A stretch of DNA of 64,000 nucleotides from Bugula neritina. Its lineage: Eukaryota > Animalia > Bryozoa. Below the pieces are notes generated by a model. That model was given only the letters and a program-made list of their open reading frames with translations. It was not told where the DNA came from and made no database searches. The stretch is taken from assembly GCA_964035545.1 (NCBI GenBank), contig OZ037769.1, forward strand, positions 17,080,633 through 17,144,632. Direction: 5' to 3'. Below are positions 35,938 through 47,274 of this stretch, piece after piece. Positions within the stretch are counted from its first letter, which is position 1; each line of letters begins with the position of its first letter. The position numbers and the translations under genes were made by a program.

Positions 35938-38824
35938 ATGATGAAAACCAGCTCCACTACAGTGAAACAGGTTTGTTATATATATATATATATATATATA
36001 TATATATATATATATATATATATATATATATATATATATATATATATATATATATATATATATATATATATATATATATATGTATATATATATATATATA
36101 TATATATATATATATATATACGTGTGTGTGTGTGTGTGTGTGCGTGCGTGCGTGCGTGCGTGCGTGCGTGCGTGCGTGCGTGCGTGCGTGTGTGTGTGTG
36201 TGTGTATAGTCTAGTATGTAATTCACCCAAGTTTATACTCACAAACCCTAGGAGAACCTTGATGGAAAGGTCTTTTTGAAGCAGCTAAGAATTTAGTTAG
36301 ATGGGGCATATAGGAGCAATCATATGACTGGATGTTCGAACCCATAACTTCATGCTTACTAAGCAAACGCTCTAACCGCTAGACCACGTCGGCTGCTCTC
36401 TGTATATAGTCTATGTAATTGTCTTGGATATTTATGTTTTATTAAGATATCTGACCTGTTTTTTATTTGAAGCCTGAGAAAGAGCTGACCATTAAACTGA
36501 AGGTCGAAAGGTCACGTGAGAAACCAACCAAGAAGCGTCTCATGAAAGAGGAAGAGACTCAACCTTTGATCAAGTGAGTTGATTATAAAAGATACCATCT
36601 ATCTTACTGTATACCATATATAATATCATATCACGATACATAAGTAGTAATATATAGTAATCGTAATATTGTAGACTTCTGATTGGACAGTTCTCTATAG
36701 CCTGTTTCATCACTTTGGTGGTGATAACATGCCGTGCCCAGGGGTACAAGTTCCTGTATGGAGACTTTGGAATTTCAATGTTTGTGGTAAATGTGAGTGA
36801 CTATGAGTATTAATATCTTATGCTGTTTCCTGTGAATAAACTAACCTGGTTCCTTTGTAATGCTGTCTCAGTGTCACCAAATTGCCTCCCTTATCCATGG
36901 AAATTCATAACTATTCATGAGGTATATAGAAATGCTATTGATACAGTAGTATTGCTATCATGAAACTAACAAATTGTAAGACTTTTGCCCCATGAGAACT
37001 GTAATGGCAGCTAGTGTGGTAACTATTGCACTATGCCCTATGAAGAGTTCTTACTACGTAGTCTCAACACTACGCAGATATAATCGCACATAATGATTTG
37101 TGTTTGTAAAAACGCATATAAAATATTAAATTTGTGTTTGTAGAATTTCATATCAAATGATAAACTTGTTTTATTTTACTTCATATTTTAGCACTTTCTA
37201 CTAGTAACTCATGCAGTGCTTGCTCTTCGCTCTACAGGAATACTTTCGGTGAGTCTCCTCCACCACTCTCAGTCTATTGTATATAATTTATATATGTATG
37301 TGTGTTATGTGTATGCGTGCGTGCGTGCGTGCGTGCGTGCGTGCGTACGTACGTATGTATTGTGTGTGTATGCATGTATGTATGTACGTATGTATGTACG
37401 TATGTATGTACGTATGTATGTATGTATGTACGTATGTACGTATGTACGTATGTATGTATGTATGTACGTATGTATAACTTTAAAATGTTCCCACAGATTT
37501 GCTGGAGCCTCTGCTGGTACATATTCATCAGTTCGAGTTTCATCTGGTCCCTGGTCAGTCTAATCCATGGCATAGCAAGTGAAACCAGGGCTACAACTTC
37601 ACAGGTACGCGAGCAACATCTTTATAGACATTAAAGACCATCACTGCACCACACTAGTACTATAGTACTAGAAATTTAGAAGTAAATGATAATATACCTT
37701 CACATTCTATTCAGTTAACTATGTAAAGCCTCTGTTAGCAGACTCTAGATTTTGAAGCCGAAAATTGCTATAAGCTCCAAAATTTTAGAGATCGGCCGAC
37801 ATGGAGAAATTGAGAAAAGCTTGTCTTCTTGACAGAAAATGTAACAAAAGAAATTATGATCTCTCTCAAAAATTTAAACCCACACCCCCAGACCAGAATT
37901 TATCAAAAGAATTAAAGAAATTAGGCTATTGAAATTTCTCGGCTGCTGAACCTAAATGTGAACTTTTGACCTCACAACCTGTTGGGACATCATTTGAATA
38001 ATAGTGTAATATAAATCTTGTAGACATCAAAGCCAGAGCACCCATTTGATCCCTTACTGGTAGCTCTGGGGATCACCACACTCTTGATCAGCATTGTGGT
38101 TCTCTGGAAACTAGTCAAAGTAACTTGTAGAGTTCGCAGAGAGCAGGCTCAGCTTCTGCGGGTATATAATATTATTATAGTACTGTATTGTTGATATCTA
38201 TTACTATAGTACTATATTATTTACATATGGTACTATATTATTGATGTATATTATATTACTATAGTACTGTATTATTTACATATGGTACTATATTATTGAT
38301 GTATATATTACTATAGTACTGTATTATTGACATATAGTACTATATTATTTACATATAGTACTCTAGTACCATATAAATGCAGCCATCTACCATTGTGTTT
38401 TGTTGTAAACCATGTTTATATGGTCTTGTATATACTTTGAAAACTCTAAAATAGAAAAATATCCAATGCATATTAGCTATCATAGTAGAAATAAATTAAC
38501 TAGTCCAACCTCATTCAATTTTTACTTCTGGAAGCTTCTTATAAGTTAGTACATGGTATTATGCCCCATTGTGATGGAAGTTTCCACCAGCAATTCACTT
38601 ATATGAAGAGTTACTCCATATATACTTGGAAACTAAACTTTCCCATTATGAATAGACTAACACTCTATGGAGTTTAGATTTCAACAATACAGCATTATTT
38701 CCACCTTATAAACTGTGTATAAGTGTGTATGAATTTGTAGCTGTTATAGGTATACATGTGTTATAATTAAGGTAGTTGTGTAAAGTGACTCTGTATGTTG
38801 TAGGAAGATGTGCAGACAGCGTAA
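35938..38824 (+). CDS. Highly divergent four-TM protein with MS4A-like exon structure, gene D
   Basis: Exons 35938-35970, ~36473-36573, 36675-36792, 37192-37248 (57 nt), 37497-37604, 38024-38161, 38804-38824; ~191 aa; [16 protein letters not shown] / [12 protein letters not shown] / [10 protein letters not shown]...LVSLIHG / [22 protein letters not shown]; frame and splice sites conserved in paralog D'. Confidence 0.8.
36205..36393 (-). mobile_element. tRNA-derived SINE with microsatellite tail (second copy ~44663-44850)
   Basis: Minus strand GCCGACGTGGTCTAGCGGTTAGAGCG (A box)...GCTTAGTAAGC...GGGTTCGAAC (B box), then a non-tRNA body running into (CA)n/(CACG)n/(TA)n; acceptor stem does not close. 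Confidence 0.65.
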
Positions 38825-41153
38825 CATCTCATTGGCTGCTGAAGATGACAACTGAAACATCTTCATTTTAAGAACAAGGCTTATTATCTCTTATAATATC
38901 AATTAATCACTAAACCATTGAATCAAATTTGTCCAATAAAACTCGAACCCCAAAAAAGTTCTATAATATATTTATATAAACTTGGTGTTTGCTATAACAT
39001 TTTTCATTTATTATTGAGTGTTGTTTCACCCATTAAACTTTATTATATTATATATTTGTAAAAAATTAATAAAAATAGCACATTTTAGTAAAAAAAATTA
39101 TTATTACAATTATAATGAGCTGTTTATGGCATTTATATATTTTTATGAATTTACACCAAAAATTCTATTTGCCAATCATATAATAAGTTTTCACGTTTGA
39201 GATATGTAATAAATCAATCAATCAAGTACATGAGTATATTATATAACTGAAATTAACTATACAACATAACTACATTAGTTTATAATATCACTTTAATAAA
39301 CTATTACACAACTATGGGAGTATATTACATGCAGTACACAAGCAAGTGTTATAGTGTTCTTTAAAAAATGTATGTGCAAGAGTAATGATTTTCTACAATT
39401 GTCAGAAATCAAATCAACAATAAGGAATGGGTTTCATATTTCCAGATAAAATTGATTCCAATATTACATAAGCTTGGTTTCAGATTCGTTGCATTAATAA
39501 CATAAGATTTAGTTTTGAGATAAATTTCGTTAGATATAGATTTAGCCCATCACCAAACTAAAGTGAGAAAATATTTGATCAAGTACATCTTGGTTTCTTG
39601 GTAATAGAACATTGCATAAACTTGCTATAATGTTGTATAAAAACTTTATTTTCCTTACAGTAGTGTGCTATTCTCTACATTGCATCTGGAGTTTTCTCCT
39701 CTTGTGCATCTGATGCATTTTTCCTTATAGCTATGGTTTATTTTTGATGTGATTTGAATCTAATCACTATATATAACTAGTCTTGCCCCCACTTAGTATT
39801 ATATAACATATTATCTATTTATATATTTCAATATACCATGTATATTTTATATTTATTATAAGTTTAAGCCTTAATAATCTTGAAGATATAAAACAACATT
39901 GTATAGCGCAAGTTGTTTTATGTAATAATACAATAAAGACAATATATGCAGTATATTATTATTTCATATTTGAAAAACTAATATATATCATTGAAACATA
40001 TCATACTTAGGCTAACACTTATATGATATGGAATTTATATTTCAACAATAAATCATTATTTCCACCTTATATTTTATATGCGTGTGCGTGAGTGCTATGG
40101 TGTATTATATAGTATATTATGTTTTATATTATGCTTGTTAGATTATATTTTTTAGTTGCATTCTTATATTGTATTATATTATGTTATATTACATCATAAG
40201 ATAATATAATGTGTAAATGTACTATATTTTATAACAATCTAGTAGAATGTAGATAGTAATCTCCGACGAGCAGCTGGAAGTAAAAATTGTCTCCTCTACT
40301 TCACCTTGAACTTTGGCACAATAATACCTGCTTAACAACATCGGTATGAAGTATATTATATTTCTATATGTACTATAAAACTTATACTAGCTTGTGTAAA
40401 GTGTGAGCCAAATAAAATTAATTGCCTAGGCATAATTATAAGGCTTTAGCTGGCAAAGAGCCAAGCAAACTGTTTCTAATACACATGCATGCGCAGCTTG
40501 GTAATATTAACACCTAGTTTAGGTCTTGGGTCCTAGGGCCCTAGGGGGTACTCACTTACGCCACTGTAAACTAATTTATAGACTATAGTAAGTGGTAGCA
40601 TAAATTTAATCTTAAATACTAACAAATTTTTATATAAAATAAAAGAATTATATTTTTATGCATTTAACAGCTGACACCATAATCAATATCATTTTCACTG
40701 ATGGAAATTTGAACATAGCTTCTTTTATGTCACTTTACATTACTATGTATAAAATATATGTTGTTATACTAGGGCATTGCTTTATTTCTCTTACTGAATT
40801 TATGGGTCTTGATGTAAAATATTATGGAATATGAGTTGGTTTTGAAGGCCACGTAACTAAGTAGTCATTACTGAATGACCAAATCTCCACATGCCAATTC
40901 ATTTAGGAGCAGTGGTGAAGAAATTGAGACAGCCTAAGTGTTTTTAAATTTCTTTATAAATTTTAGAAATAGATTTTCACGAGAACATAACTTCCTTTGC
41001 TACATTTCTAATCTAGAACACAGGCTTTTCTCAATTTCTCCATTACTGCACCTACCAGATCTGTGTGCCAGTTTCAGAAGTTTACAGCAAGACTTCATGT
41101 GAAGTAAAAAAACTCCTTAGGTGGTGTGATAGTGCGAGTGATTTCTGCTGTAG

Positions 41154-47200: not shown

Positions 47201-47274
47201 CCTACATGTGTTATAATTCATGTAGTTGTGTAGAGTGACTCTGTATGTTGTAGGAAGGTGTGCAGACAGCGTAA
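44226..47274 (+). CDS. Four-TM protein gene D', recent paralog of D
   Basis: Same seven-exon layout (exon3 45126-45243, exon5 46095-46205), intact splice sites and frame, ends EGVQTA*. Confidence 0.8.

Follow-up and report, generated by a model that had tools for sequence, protein, structure and literature searches.

Clustered amino acid replacements in TM2 and TM3 of two tandem gene copies encoding a predicted four-pass membrane protein in Bugula neritina

Why should two tandem copies of a gene differ more in their coding exons than in their introns? This question is raised by D and D', two genes of the bryozoan Bugula neritina that lie in a window of 64,000 nucleotides, the whole stretch of DNA analyzed here. 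The window hosts two directly abutting duplication units:

26340-40693, forward strand: duplication unit A, with genes C and D; self-blastn blocks are 90-95% identical to unit B
29562-34074, forward strand: gene C, a distant paralog of D, in unit A
35938-38824, forward strand: gene D, seven exons, 191 codons
40732-48933, forward strand: duplication unit B, with genes C' and D'
41478-43150: gene C', the copy of C in unit B
44226-47274, forward strand: gene D', seven exons, 192 codons

Unit A is longer because of two additions, an insertion at about 26985-29500 and an LTR element at 31206-33865; this 2.7-kb LTR insertion and other indels set the two units apart. The window contains no N, and neither unit is interrupted by an assembly gap. 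Between the units, the non-coding mismatch divergence is 2.7-4.6% outside the middle of C.

As originally predicted, D and D' have both kept frame and splice sites: the two seven-exon models close in frame, with AG/GT (GT-AG) sites at every boundary and an intact stop codon. The exons of D, the predicted transmembrane (TM) segments that they encode, and their counterparts in D' are the following:

35938-35970, forward strand: exon 1, ATG, 11 codons; identical in D' (44226-44258)
36473-36573, forward strand: exon 2, charged N-terminal tail; 7 of 33 residues differ from D' (44930-45030)
36675-36792, forward strand: exon 3, TM1, loop 1 and start of TM2; D' 45126-45243
36757-36792, forward strand: exon 3 patch, 12 codons with 13 nucleotide and 8 amino acid differences; D' 45208-45243
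37192-37248, forward strand: exon 4, 57 nucleotides, second half of TM2; 4 of 19 residues differ; D' 45653-45709
37497-37604, forward strand: exon 5, TM3 and start of loop 3; D' 46095-46205, one codon longer
37506-37577, forward strand: exon 5 patch, 25 codon columns with 20 nucleotide and 12 amino acid differences and a codon indel; D' about 46104-46178
38024-38161, forward strand: exon 6, loop 3, TM4 and basic tail; D' 46605-46742
38804-38824, forward strand: exon 7, 6 codons and TAA; D' 47254-47274

Judging from hydropathy, the genes would encode a membrane protein of four passes, whose N-terminal tail is charged and whose C-terminal tail is basic. The hydropathy cores reach 2.31 in exon 3, 1.1-1.4 in exon 4 and 2.70 in exon 6, the best 15-residue mean of exon 5 is 2.03 in D and 1.50 in D', and exons 1, 2 and 7 are hydrophilic. 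Both tails are predicted to be cytoplasmic, with the orientation taken from the basic tails.

The gene is spliced and transcribed. The contigs of an RNA run from an independent 2016 sample (X8) cover exons 2-4, with a depth of around 3000 in exon 2 and 0 in intron 2. These contigs end exactly at both donor sites (36573 and 36792), a joint from 36792 to 37201 corresponds to the splice between exons 3 and 4, and the loose end of one contig continues past exon 4 into the first bases of exon 5. Support for the spliced transcripts on which the original prediction depended thus extends over the junctions between the last bases of exon 2 and the first bases of exon 5, with exons 1, 6 and 7 and their junctions uncovered. 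D-type transcripts are clear (exon 3 contigs at a depth of around 1084). D'-type transcripts are probably present, as indicated by one short RNA piece (X8 contig 30, depth around 234), whose alignment reaches only 36766 and which bears two of the three D' letters in reach, 6-9 letters before the alignment break. One joint between exons 3 and 4 shows D'-like first letters in exon 4.

Overall, D and D' differ at 36 residues and by one in-frame codon indel in exon 5, in agreement with the estimate of about 36 out of about 191 residues made before, and 8 codons differ in a purely synonymous way (about 7 had been claimed). From exon 1 to exon 7, the amino acid differences are 0, 7, 8, 4, 12, 4 and 1. 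Nei-Gojobori counting returns 11 synonymous differences over 136 sites and 49 nonsynonymous differences over 437 sites, and the whole-gene omega is only 1.42. The exons are 10.4% divergent and the non-coding sequence (introns and 5' flank) 3.7%, which is a 2.8-fold difference (P-value = 6.8e-9, Fisher test). Introns are therefore less divergent than exons, as had been noted, but their description as near-identical was too strong, since their aligned sites show 72 mismatches out of 1929 (96.3% identity), alongside several indels and microsatellite length differences. The introns adjoining the patches are 2-5.5% divergent.

Within the coding sequence, the differences are clustered rather than evenly spread. 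Up to 8 of them fall within 12 codons (P-value = 0.02, permutation) and up to 13 within 25 codons (P-value = 0.004), which confirms the clusters that were originally placed in exons 3 and 5, where all quoted peptides were also found. The exon 3 patch is the top mismatch window of the whole 3.2-kb alignment. The claim that TM1 and TM4 are unchanged holds as well: exon 3 shows no difference over its first 27 residues, which span TM1 and loop 1, and exon 6 shows none over its first 32, which span a loop and TM4. The 4 changes of exon 6 all lie within its last 14 residues.

In both patches, replacements exceed synonymous changes, with pN and pS of 0.428 and 0.093 in the exon 3 patch, and of 0.334 and 0.082 in the exon 5 patch. 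Taken together, the patches show pN of 0.366 versus pS of 0.086 (P-value = 0.010, Fisher test), where, as for all selection figures given here, the value comes from one pairwise comparison and from patches picked after seeing the data. The excess of replacement claimed for TM2 and TM3, with dN above dS, is thus recovered. The patch pN is ten times the non-coding divergence (P-value = 1.6e-20), and the patch pS is at the level of the rest of the gene (pN 0.051, pS 0.080). If pS equalled pN in the patches, two or fewer synonymous differences in 23 sites would be expected with P = 0.003, and in simulated random mutation of the patches synonymous changes were this few in only 0.2% of cases. Over codon positions 1, 2 and 3, the patch changes split 14:12:7, with about two synonymous steps. 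Outside the TM2-TM3 segment, pN (0.046) and pS (0.063) are at the non-coding level. As far as this comparison of sequences goes, amino acid-level positive selection on the TM2 and TM3 patches appears well supported. We consider it probable that D and D' are young tandem copies (non-coding divergence around 4%), that selection acted on replacements in TM2-TM3, and that D' is specialized. After the duplication, selection would have favored amino acid replacements in the TM2-TM3 hairpin, with TM1, loop 1, TM4 and the introns remaining at the neutral level.

A decaying D', gathering random changes under relaxed constraint, would account for some of these features. The companion gene C' in the same unit carries a GT-to-CT donor change and a frame-breaking 83-nucleotide exon, TM3 of D' is less hydrophobic than that of D and gains prolines, and omega outside the patches (around 0.6-0.7) is indistinguishable from 1. 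Under neutrality, however, pN, pS and intron divergence should all be similar, at around 4-8%, and patches of 37% would not be expected beside an untouched TM1 and TM4. Since D' has also kept its frame, all splice sites and the stop codon, and its letters from the first part of the exon 3 patch are seen in one RNA piece, we regard decay as very improbable.

Errors of assembly or alignment, or a wrong reading frame, could likewise produce dense patches, as microsatellites adjoin the exons and make the region hard to assemble. We searched two runs of DNA contigs (X1 and X2) and another sample under the same species label (X3). In run X1, no D-type contig is listed across 36638-36791. However, contigs of X1 and X2 show the same 13 D' letters in the exon 3 patch, so that the D' patch is no assembly error, and the letters of D are likewise found again in X3, X2 and X8. 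Together with the RNA contig ends at the modelled donor sites and the codon-position split reported above, these data largely refute an artifact, to which we assign hardly any probability.

The comparison with other individuals also indicates which copy has changed. In X3, X2 and X8, none of the 13 letters of the D-type exon 3 patch is altered, yet the introns of these runs are 4-9% divergent from D, which argues that the patch is constrained in D and is no mutational hot spot. Because the patch retained by other individuals is that of D, the derived copy is probably D'. Where these individuals are readable, the changes are derived in D' in the exon 3 patch and in the first 23 bases of exon 5, and a few, located in exon 2 and in the first bases of exon 4, are derived in D; this polarity relies on incomplete contig tables for exons 2-4 and on those 23 bases of exon 5. 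The constancy of the D-type patch elsewhere suggests a one-sided burst in D' rather than ongoing diversification. The D' type, too, is met again with hardly any alteration, one codon in RNA being variant. Searches at the DNA and protein level with the exons of D and D' found no third copy or donor in the 216-Mb assembly, which holds two copies only, and no relatives among 1.84 billion representative proteins or in JGI metagenome contigs. The data therefore do not bear out the diversifying receptor family that was originally proposed. One daughter copy would have specialized, instead of an open-ended repertoire being diversified.

Alternatively, the TM2-TM3 coding sequence of one copy may have been overwritten by conversion from a diverged allele or paralog outside the assembly. 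A spliced cDNA may have served as the template and would account for a change that is contiguous in the mRNA while the two inner introns are unchanged. The variable stretch does run contiguously in the mRNA, from codon 28 of exon 3 to codon 28 of exon 5, across conserved introns. In exon 4, where pS is raised, the divergence begins at the first base, the 70 intron bases before it being identical. Of the first 7 bases of this exon, 4 are changed, and two of these changes give codons that differ only synonymously. When TM2-TM3 is treated as a single segment of 59 codons, its pS is 0.121, three times the non-coding value of 0.037 (P-value = 0.02), and the comparison of nonsynonymous with synonymous changes gives P = 0.088. 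The segment pS and the start of exon 4 make a partial import of older sequence possible. Exchange does happen in this cluster, as deduced from C and C', which are a mosaic of young and old tracts: pS is 0.25-0.29 in their TM2b and TM3 exons, equal to pN, the stretch around the TM2b exon is only 78% identical and other parts are unalignable. This is the appearance of an older or exchanged tract. Further variants also exist in other samples, and the end of exon 4 reads differently in X8.

Several observations stand against such an import. The 216 Mb contain no donor for DNA or protein queries, and the dense-patch pS is at background with pN of 0.37, where omega of 1 or less gives P = 0.003, so that an imported segment too must have been shaped by amino acid selection. 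Conserved codons are scattered among the changed ones, which indicates that the two segments are homologous. In addition, one RNA contig reads TTT where D has TAT and D' has CTT, a possible single-step intermediate between the two. Gene-conversion tracts, against which the original prediction had set its reading, are thus disfavored by the patch pS and by the lack of a donor in the assembly, but not by exon 4. Overall, we hold an import to be unlikely.

The same samples bear on another explanation, in which balancing selection has maintained the D and D' segments as ancient allelic lineages, in a region of polymorphic structure like those of allorecognition loci, and the tandem layout of the assembly is one haplotype configuration only. 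At least three sequence types occur among the four runs. X3 has a single type across exon 3, and its introns are 4-9% from D, more than D is from D'; X2 holds an X3-like type plus a near-exact D'. The single type of X3 suggests that D' may be absent or polymorphic in the population, and that D and D' could partly behave as haplotypes. However, old lineages should raise synonymous and intron divergence, and the observed values are 2-5.5% for the introns and 0.086 for the patch pS. The two copies also lie in a gap-free assembly, in units that differ by the LTR insertion and other indels. Finally, Bugula neritina is a complex of cryptic species, which could account for the divergent samples without balancing selection. 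We consider long-lived haplotypes quite improbable.

To return to selection on a specialized D', the position of the changes may suggest what was selected. They span the outer start of TM2, some positions of its inner half and nearly all of TM3, where D' gains two prolines together with several residues that are polar or charged (Q, N, H, H, R). A helical-moment test found no helical periodicity of the changed positions in TM3 (P-value = 0.36) or TM2 (P-value = 0.19). The predicted extracellular loops are invariant, including loop 1, which had been put forward as a specificity surface and finds no support as such. In secreted or surface proteins, exposed loops are where positive selection is usually found. 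In D and D', it would sit inside two membrane helices of a taxon-restricted four-pass protein, with the loops untouched, which suggests that the trait under selection is an intramembrane interaction, be it with a partner helix, at an oligomer interface, in a pore or with a small ligand. Through its replacements, D' would have gained a different partner helix, a different oligomer interface or another intramembrane specificity for a small ligand or ion. A bolder reading, to which we give little chance, is that the TM2-TM3 hairpin is an intramembrane specificity determinant with several sharply different selected versions in Bugula populations. If so, these versions might serve self or kin recognition or symbiont handling in a colonial animal, and they could be swapped between copies by conversion templated by spliced RNA, with the introns untouched.

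Adaptive divergence after gene duplication is a familiar phenomenon. As in neofunctionalization, one copy keeps the sequence of other individuals and the other shows a burst of replacements with dN higher than dS in a defined region, although for D and D' the polarity is partial (from contig tables that cover exons 2-4 and the beginning of exon 5). The closest resemblance to an import is the accelerated segment switch in exons (ASSET), or accelerated exon evolution, of snake-venom toxin genes (Doley et al. 2008, PMC2474615; 2009, PMC2711939). In both systems, young tandem paralogs carry short exon segments that are radically different, and the introns are highly similar. Snake toxins, however, are secreted, change in their surface loops and have segments described as 'unrelated', while D and D' encode a predicted integral membrane protein, have codon-alignable segments, show no rise at the synonymous sites of the dense patches and are two copies only. 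The case rests on one gene pair, whose members are naturally occurring, nearly isogenic variants with most of their differences in TM2 and TM3, and are handy for functional comparison.

The original prediction likened D to the MS4A proteins. Two neighboring genes match this family (CD20-like, PF04103):

24399-25707, forward strand: gene B, CD20-like; PF04103 E = 1.2e-5 in the TM1 exon and 0.0063 in the TM4 exon
54216-54571, forward strand: gene F, with a PF04103-like TM1 exon (20 bits, 54219-54365) followed by a 57-nucleotide exon

A genome-wide PF04103 scan lists B and F, and D and D' are absent from it. Exon by exon, at E up to 10, no PF04103 match was found for exons 2, 3, 5 and 6 of D or for exons 3, 5 and 6 of D', in a test of low power on pieces of 33-46 residues. 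When exon 3 of D and D' was aligned by hhalign with five CD20-like TM1-TM2 exons of the genome, no relationship emerged (probability 0.9%, E = 0.059, 17 columns). Invertebrate 'MS4A-like' similarity has been judged non-specific before (Zuccolo et al. 2010, PMC2826416).

The gene structure is shared, in contrast to the sequence. Genes B, C, D, D' and F share one strand and a span of 31 kb, and all have an exon of exactly 57 nucleotides. The intron phases of D are those of the Pfam-positive gene B at all TM-exon boundaries. In the common structure, the TM1 exon is entered after two codon bases and ends in phase 0, and is followed by the 57-nucleotide exon, a TM3 exon of 90-111 nucleotides and a TM4 exon of 138-141 nucleotides. 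Like CD20-like and MS4A proteins, D is a small predicted four-pass protein from a tandem gene cluster, with predicted cytoplasmic tails and a short loop 1, and its TM1 begins with L-x-I-x-Q, as in its CD20-like neighbors. Unlike the CD20-like exons of the genome, which have G-x-W-x-G at the start of TM2 with invariant G, W and G, D carries a replacement there, inside the most variable patch. Greer and colleagues are said to have placed, in 2016, the fast-evolving sites of mammalian MS4A chemosensors in extracellular loops, whereas in D and D' the loops are invariant and the helices vary. The intron phases and 57-nucleotide exon shared with two Pfam-CD20-positive neighbors make distant kinship plausible, and D is plausibly a very divergent member of the local CD20-like cluster by structure and position, with a sequence that does not show the kinship. 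CD20-like proteins are poorly understood outside vertebrates, and D would be a further example from an invertebrate. C resembles D also in its exon phases, in its GY(K/N)F loop and in its TM4 tail. C' ends with the same last exon as D (6 codons and TAA), followed by a 31-nucleotide repeat, and C bears the same repeat motif at 34045.

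Self-comparison of the window, whose N count is 0, revealed a head-to-tail duplication. Apart from one older tract, its two units differ by 2.7-4.6% mismatches in non-coding sequence. On the + strand, each unit hosts a pair of small genes: C followed by D in unit A, and their respective copies C' and D' in unit B, with C and C' being distant paralogs of D. A seven-exon model (E1-E7) of the four-pass membrane-protein genes D and D' was reproduced by global alignment and coordinate mapping, and all peptides quoted in the original prediction were located in the window. All acceptors are AG and all donors GT, and both frames, of 191 codons in D and 192 in D', close at TAA. 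According to per-exon hydropathy, E1, E2 and E7 are hydrophilic and four hydrophobic segments are present: E3 contains TM1, E5 TM3 and E6 TM4, and TM2 spans the junction of E3 and E4.

Duplicated units and exons of D and D' (window positions; exons on the + strand)
Unit A: ~26340-40693, enlarged by an insertion (26985-29500) and an LTR element (31206-33865)
Unit B: 40732-48933
E1: D 35938-35970; D' 44226-44258
E2: D 36473-36573; D' 44930-45030
E3: D 36675-36792; D' 45126-45243
E4: D 37192-37248; D' 45653-45709
E5: D 37497-37604; D' 46095-46205
E6: D 38024-38161; D' 46605-46742
E7: D 38804-38824; D' 47254-47274

Intron 1 of both D (36326-36399) and D' (44783-44856) contains a stretch of ~70 nt with a tRNA-like GTTCGAA box, which is hugely repeated in all four sequencing runs compared with the locus (summed contig depth 1e4-1e5, with many differing flanks). 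ARAGORN called no tRNA in this stretch, which is probably a SINE-type repeat.

We relied on an RNA run from 2016 (X8, kept as contigs), compared over 36215-37295, for transcription evidence. Its contigs sum to a depth of ~1000-3000 over E2 and E3; in intron 2 the depth falls to zero, and intron 3 shows either ~250 or zero. Two contigs terminate precisely at exon ends, one at 36573 and the other at 36792. The joint from 36792 to E4 has nine letters between its two sides, eight of which are those of the start of D' exon 4, and a contig leaving E4 extends into E5 and covers its first 23 bases. Taken together, these contig ends, the joint and the read-through confirm E2, E3 and E4 and the splices that join E3 to E4 and E4 to E5; for E1, E6, E7 and their junctions, the gene model is a prediction.

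D and D' differ by 36 amino acids and one codon indel, while purely synonymous changes affect eight codons. Over the whole gene, the Nei-Gojobori method gives pS=0.081 (11/136) and pN=0.112 (49/437), with omega 1.42. When microsatellites and gaps are excluded, 72 of 1929 sites in introns and 5' flank are mismatched (3.7%), compared to 60 of 576 in exons (10.4%; p=6.8e-9, Fisher test). The original observation of concentrated replacement in exons that diverge more than introns is real and statistically solid. In the 3.2-kb alignment, the three 36-column windows with the highest mismatch density all lie in two patches of dense replacement, E3 codons 28-39 and E5 codons 4-28.

pN and pS between D and D' by coding region
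Two patches (E3 codons 28-39, E5 codons 4-28): pN 0.366, pS 0.086
Coding sequence outside the two patches: pN 0.051, pS 0.080
TM2-TM3 segment as a single mRNA stretch (59 codons): pN 0.263, pS 0.121
Outside the TM2-TM3 segment: pN 0.046, pS 0.063

Within the patches, the difference between pN and pS is significant (p=0.010, Fisher test), and pN is tenfold the non-coding rate (p=1.6e-20). Only 0.2% of trials in which the patches were mutated at random had so few synonymous steps, and if pS equaled pN, two or fewer synonymous differences would be expected with p=0.003. Replacements are also clustered along the protein (p=0.02 with a 12-codon window, p=0.004 with a 25-codon window). The ratio of transitions to transversions, 15:18 in the patches and 47:25 in non-coding sequence, is not significantly different (p=0.086). 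The TM2-TM3 region has been selected for amino-acid change, while TM1, TM4 and the loops are unchanged. Selection of this kind, as proposed in the original prediction, is thus upheld; the assignment of D and D' to a receptor family and their membership in MS4A are unproven.

The same prediction had considered gene conversion from an older paralog as a source of the patches, with raised dS in the patches as its sign, and this sign is absent in both of them. When E3 codon 28 to E5 codon 28 is read as one mRNA stretch, pS amounts to three times the divergence of non-coding sequence (p=0.02), mostly owing to the first bases of exon 4. We searched the whole 216-Mb assembly for a donor or third copy, using DNA and protein queries of exons 3, 5 and 6 of D and D' and the D' patches alone, and recovered only D and D'; with tblastn across the window, the sole match was weak, to a TM4-like exon in gene C. 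Less probably, the patch changes were delivered by the import of a segment, perhaps via cDNA; even so, that segment would need to have been shaped by protein-level selection.

The appearance of an old or exchanged tract can be seen in the TM2b-TM3 region of C and C'. There, pS is 0.25-0.29 and equal to pN in the TM2b and TM3 exons (overall, pN 0.140 and pS 0.139), and the stretch aligned around the TM2b exon has 78% identity, other parts being unalignable. The D/D' patches are unlike this tract, because only their amino-acid-changing sites moved. When C' (41478-42481) is set against C (29562-30762), the middle of the gene pair, introns included, is ~20% diverged or unalignable and the rest of the unit 3-5% diverged, so that the duplication unit is a mosaic of ages. 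C' looks like a pseudogene, since the donor after its TM1 exon (41602) is CT instead of GT, and its TM3 exon, at 83 nt rather than 90, disrupts the reading frame. The last intron of C hosts the LTR element, absent from unit B, with an open frame at 31656-33029 in which Pfam recognizes zinc-knuckle and aspartyl-protease domains.

To polarize the changes, we used X8 and three further runs (X1, X2 and X3). DNA contigs from X1 and X2 contain the D' patch letters without any change, and none of the 13 D patch letters is altered in X3, X2 or X8. In X3, the adjacent introns are 4-9% different from D, and the exon 3 differences are mostly synonymous. The patch is thus constrained in the D type despite intron divergence, and the simplest account of the 13 changes is that they are derived in D'. 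An X8 transcript likewise has the D form at the first three differing positions of the exon 5 patch. D changed too, since the D' state is the one found in the other samples at 36518, 36557, 36566 and 36592 and where exon 4 begins. At a codon that is TAT in D and CTT in D', one contig of X8 reads TTT, a possible stepwise intermediate between the two.

X3, which bears the same species label, shows a single sequence type over 36519-37059, including exon 3, and two half-depth variants upstream of 36546. D' may therefore vary in copy number or presence between colonies. The intron divergence of X3 from the assembly exceeds that between D and D', and the overall pattern could reflect a cryptic lineage, a variable copy number or high polymorphism of the region.

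The TM2-TM3 hairpin could form an intramembrane interaction or ligand site, the specificity of which would have shifted in D'. Gains in D' include two prolines as well as Q, N, H, H and R. A hypothesis that the changes line one pocket or face was considered; the changed residues are instead spread around the helices with no significant helical moment (p=0.36 and p=0.19), so that a single pocket or stripe is unsupported. Exons that evolve faster than introns are also found in MHC genes. The exon-over-intron change of D/D' is a phenomenon of an already known kind; as in D and D', exons outpace introns in young tandem snake toxin genes, including by patchwise 'ASSET' (PMC2474615, PMC2711939).

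Sequence searches returned no family for D and D'. Pfam gave no meaningful match to their exons taken singly, the PDB sequence search matched no chain with exons 3 and 6, and a word-index search with the open frames containing exon 5 of either gene found nothing. For exon 6, phmmer against 1.84 billion representatives gave 0 hits, and the ESM Atlas matched no cluster, returning nothing better than generic look-alikes with a single pass, all below 0.9. Neither exon 6 nor exon 3 had a match in JGI metagenome scans, and when exon 3 of D/D' was compared by hhalign with five CD20-like exons of the locality, the probability was 0.9%.

Pfam CD20 is matched by the two genes flanking the C-D-C'-D' block, one at 24400-24540 and 25567-25734 (gene B) and the other at 54219-54365. 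Both share their architecture with C and D/D': the TM1 exon is entered after two codon bases and ends in phase 0, and is followed by an exon of exactly 57 nt, a TM3 exon of 90-111 nt and a TM4 exon of 138-141 nt. Because of this shared architecture and of synteny, rather than sequence, D and D' probably belong to a local cluster of CD20-like genes, as highly divergent members. Their nearest named family is that of the vertebrate MS4A genes; Zuccolo et al. judged invertebrate MS4A similarity unconvincing (PMC2826416).

C' and D also end alike, in a short last exon with a 31-nt repeat behind it, the motif of which is present in C too. This motif (core CTCATTGGCTGC) occurs at 34045, downstream of C, and at 38828, 43090-43183 and 47278-47309, in one to four tandem copies depending on the gene (one after D, two after D', three or four after C'), and is possibly a 3'UTR element. 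Upstream of the cluster lie an intronless DnaJ/Hsp40 gene (DnaJ, DnaJ_C; 9280-10341) and a class I/II aminotransferase exon (15169-15744). Before the TM3 exon of gene B, a 25-nt acceptor-carrying unit (GTTTTAGATTATCA...) is present in three tandem copies (24963-25020), offering three alternative AG sites.
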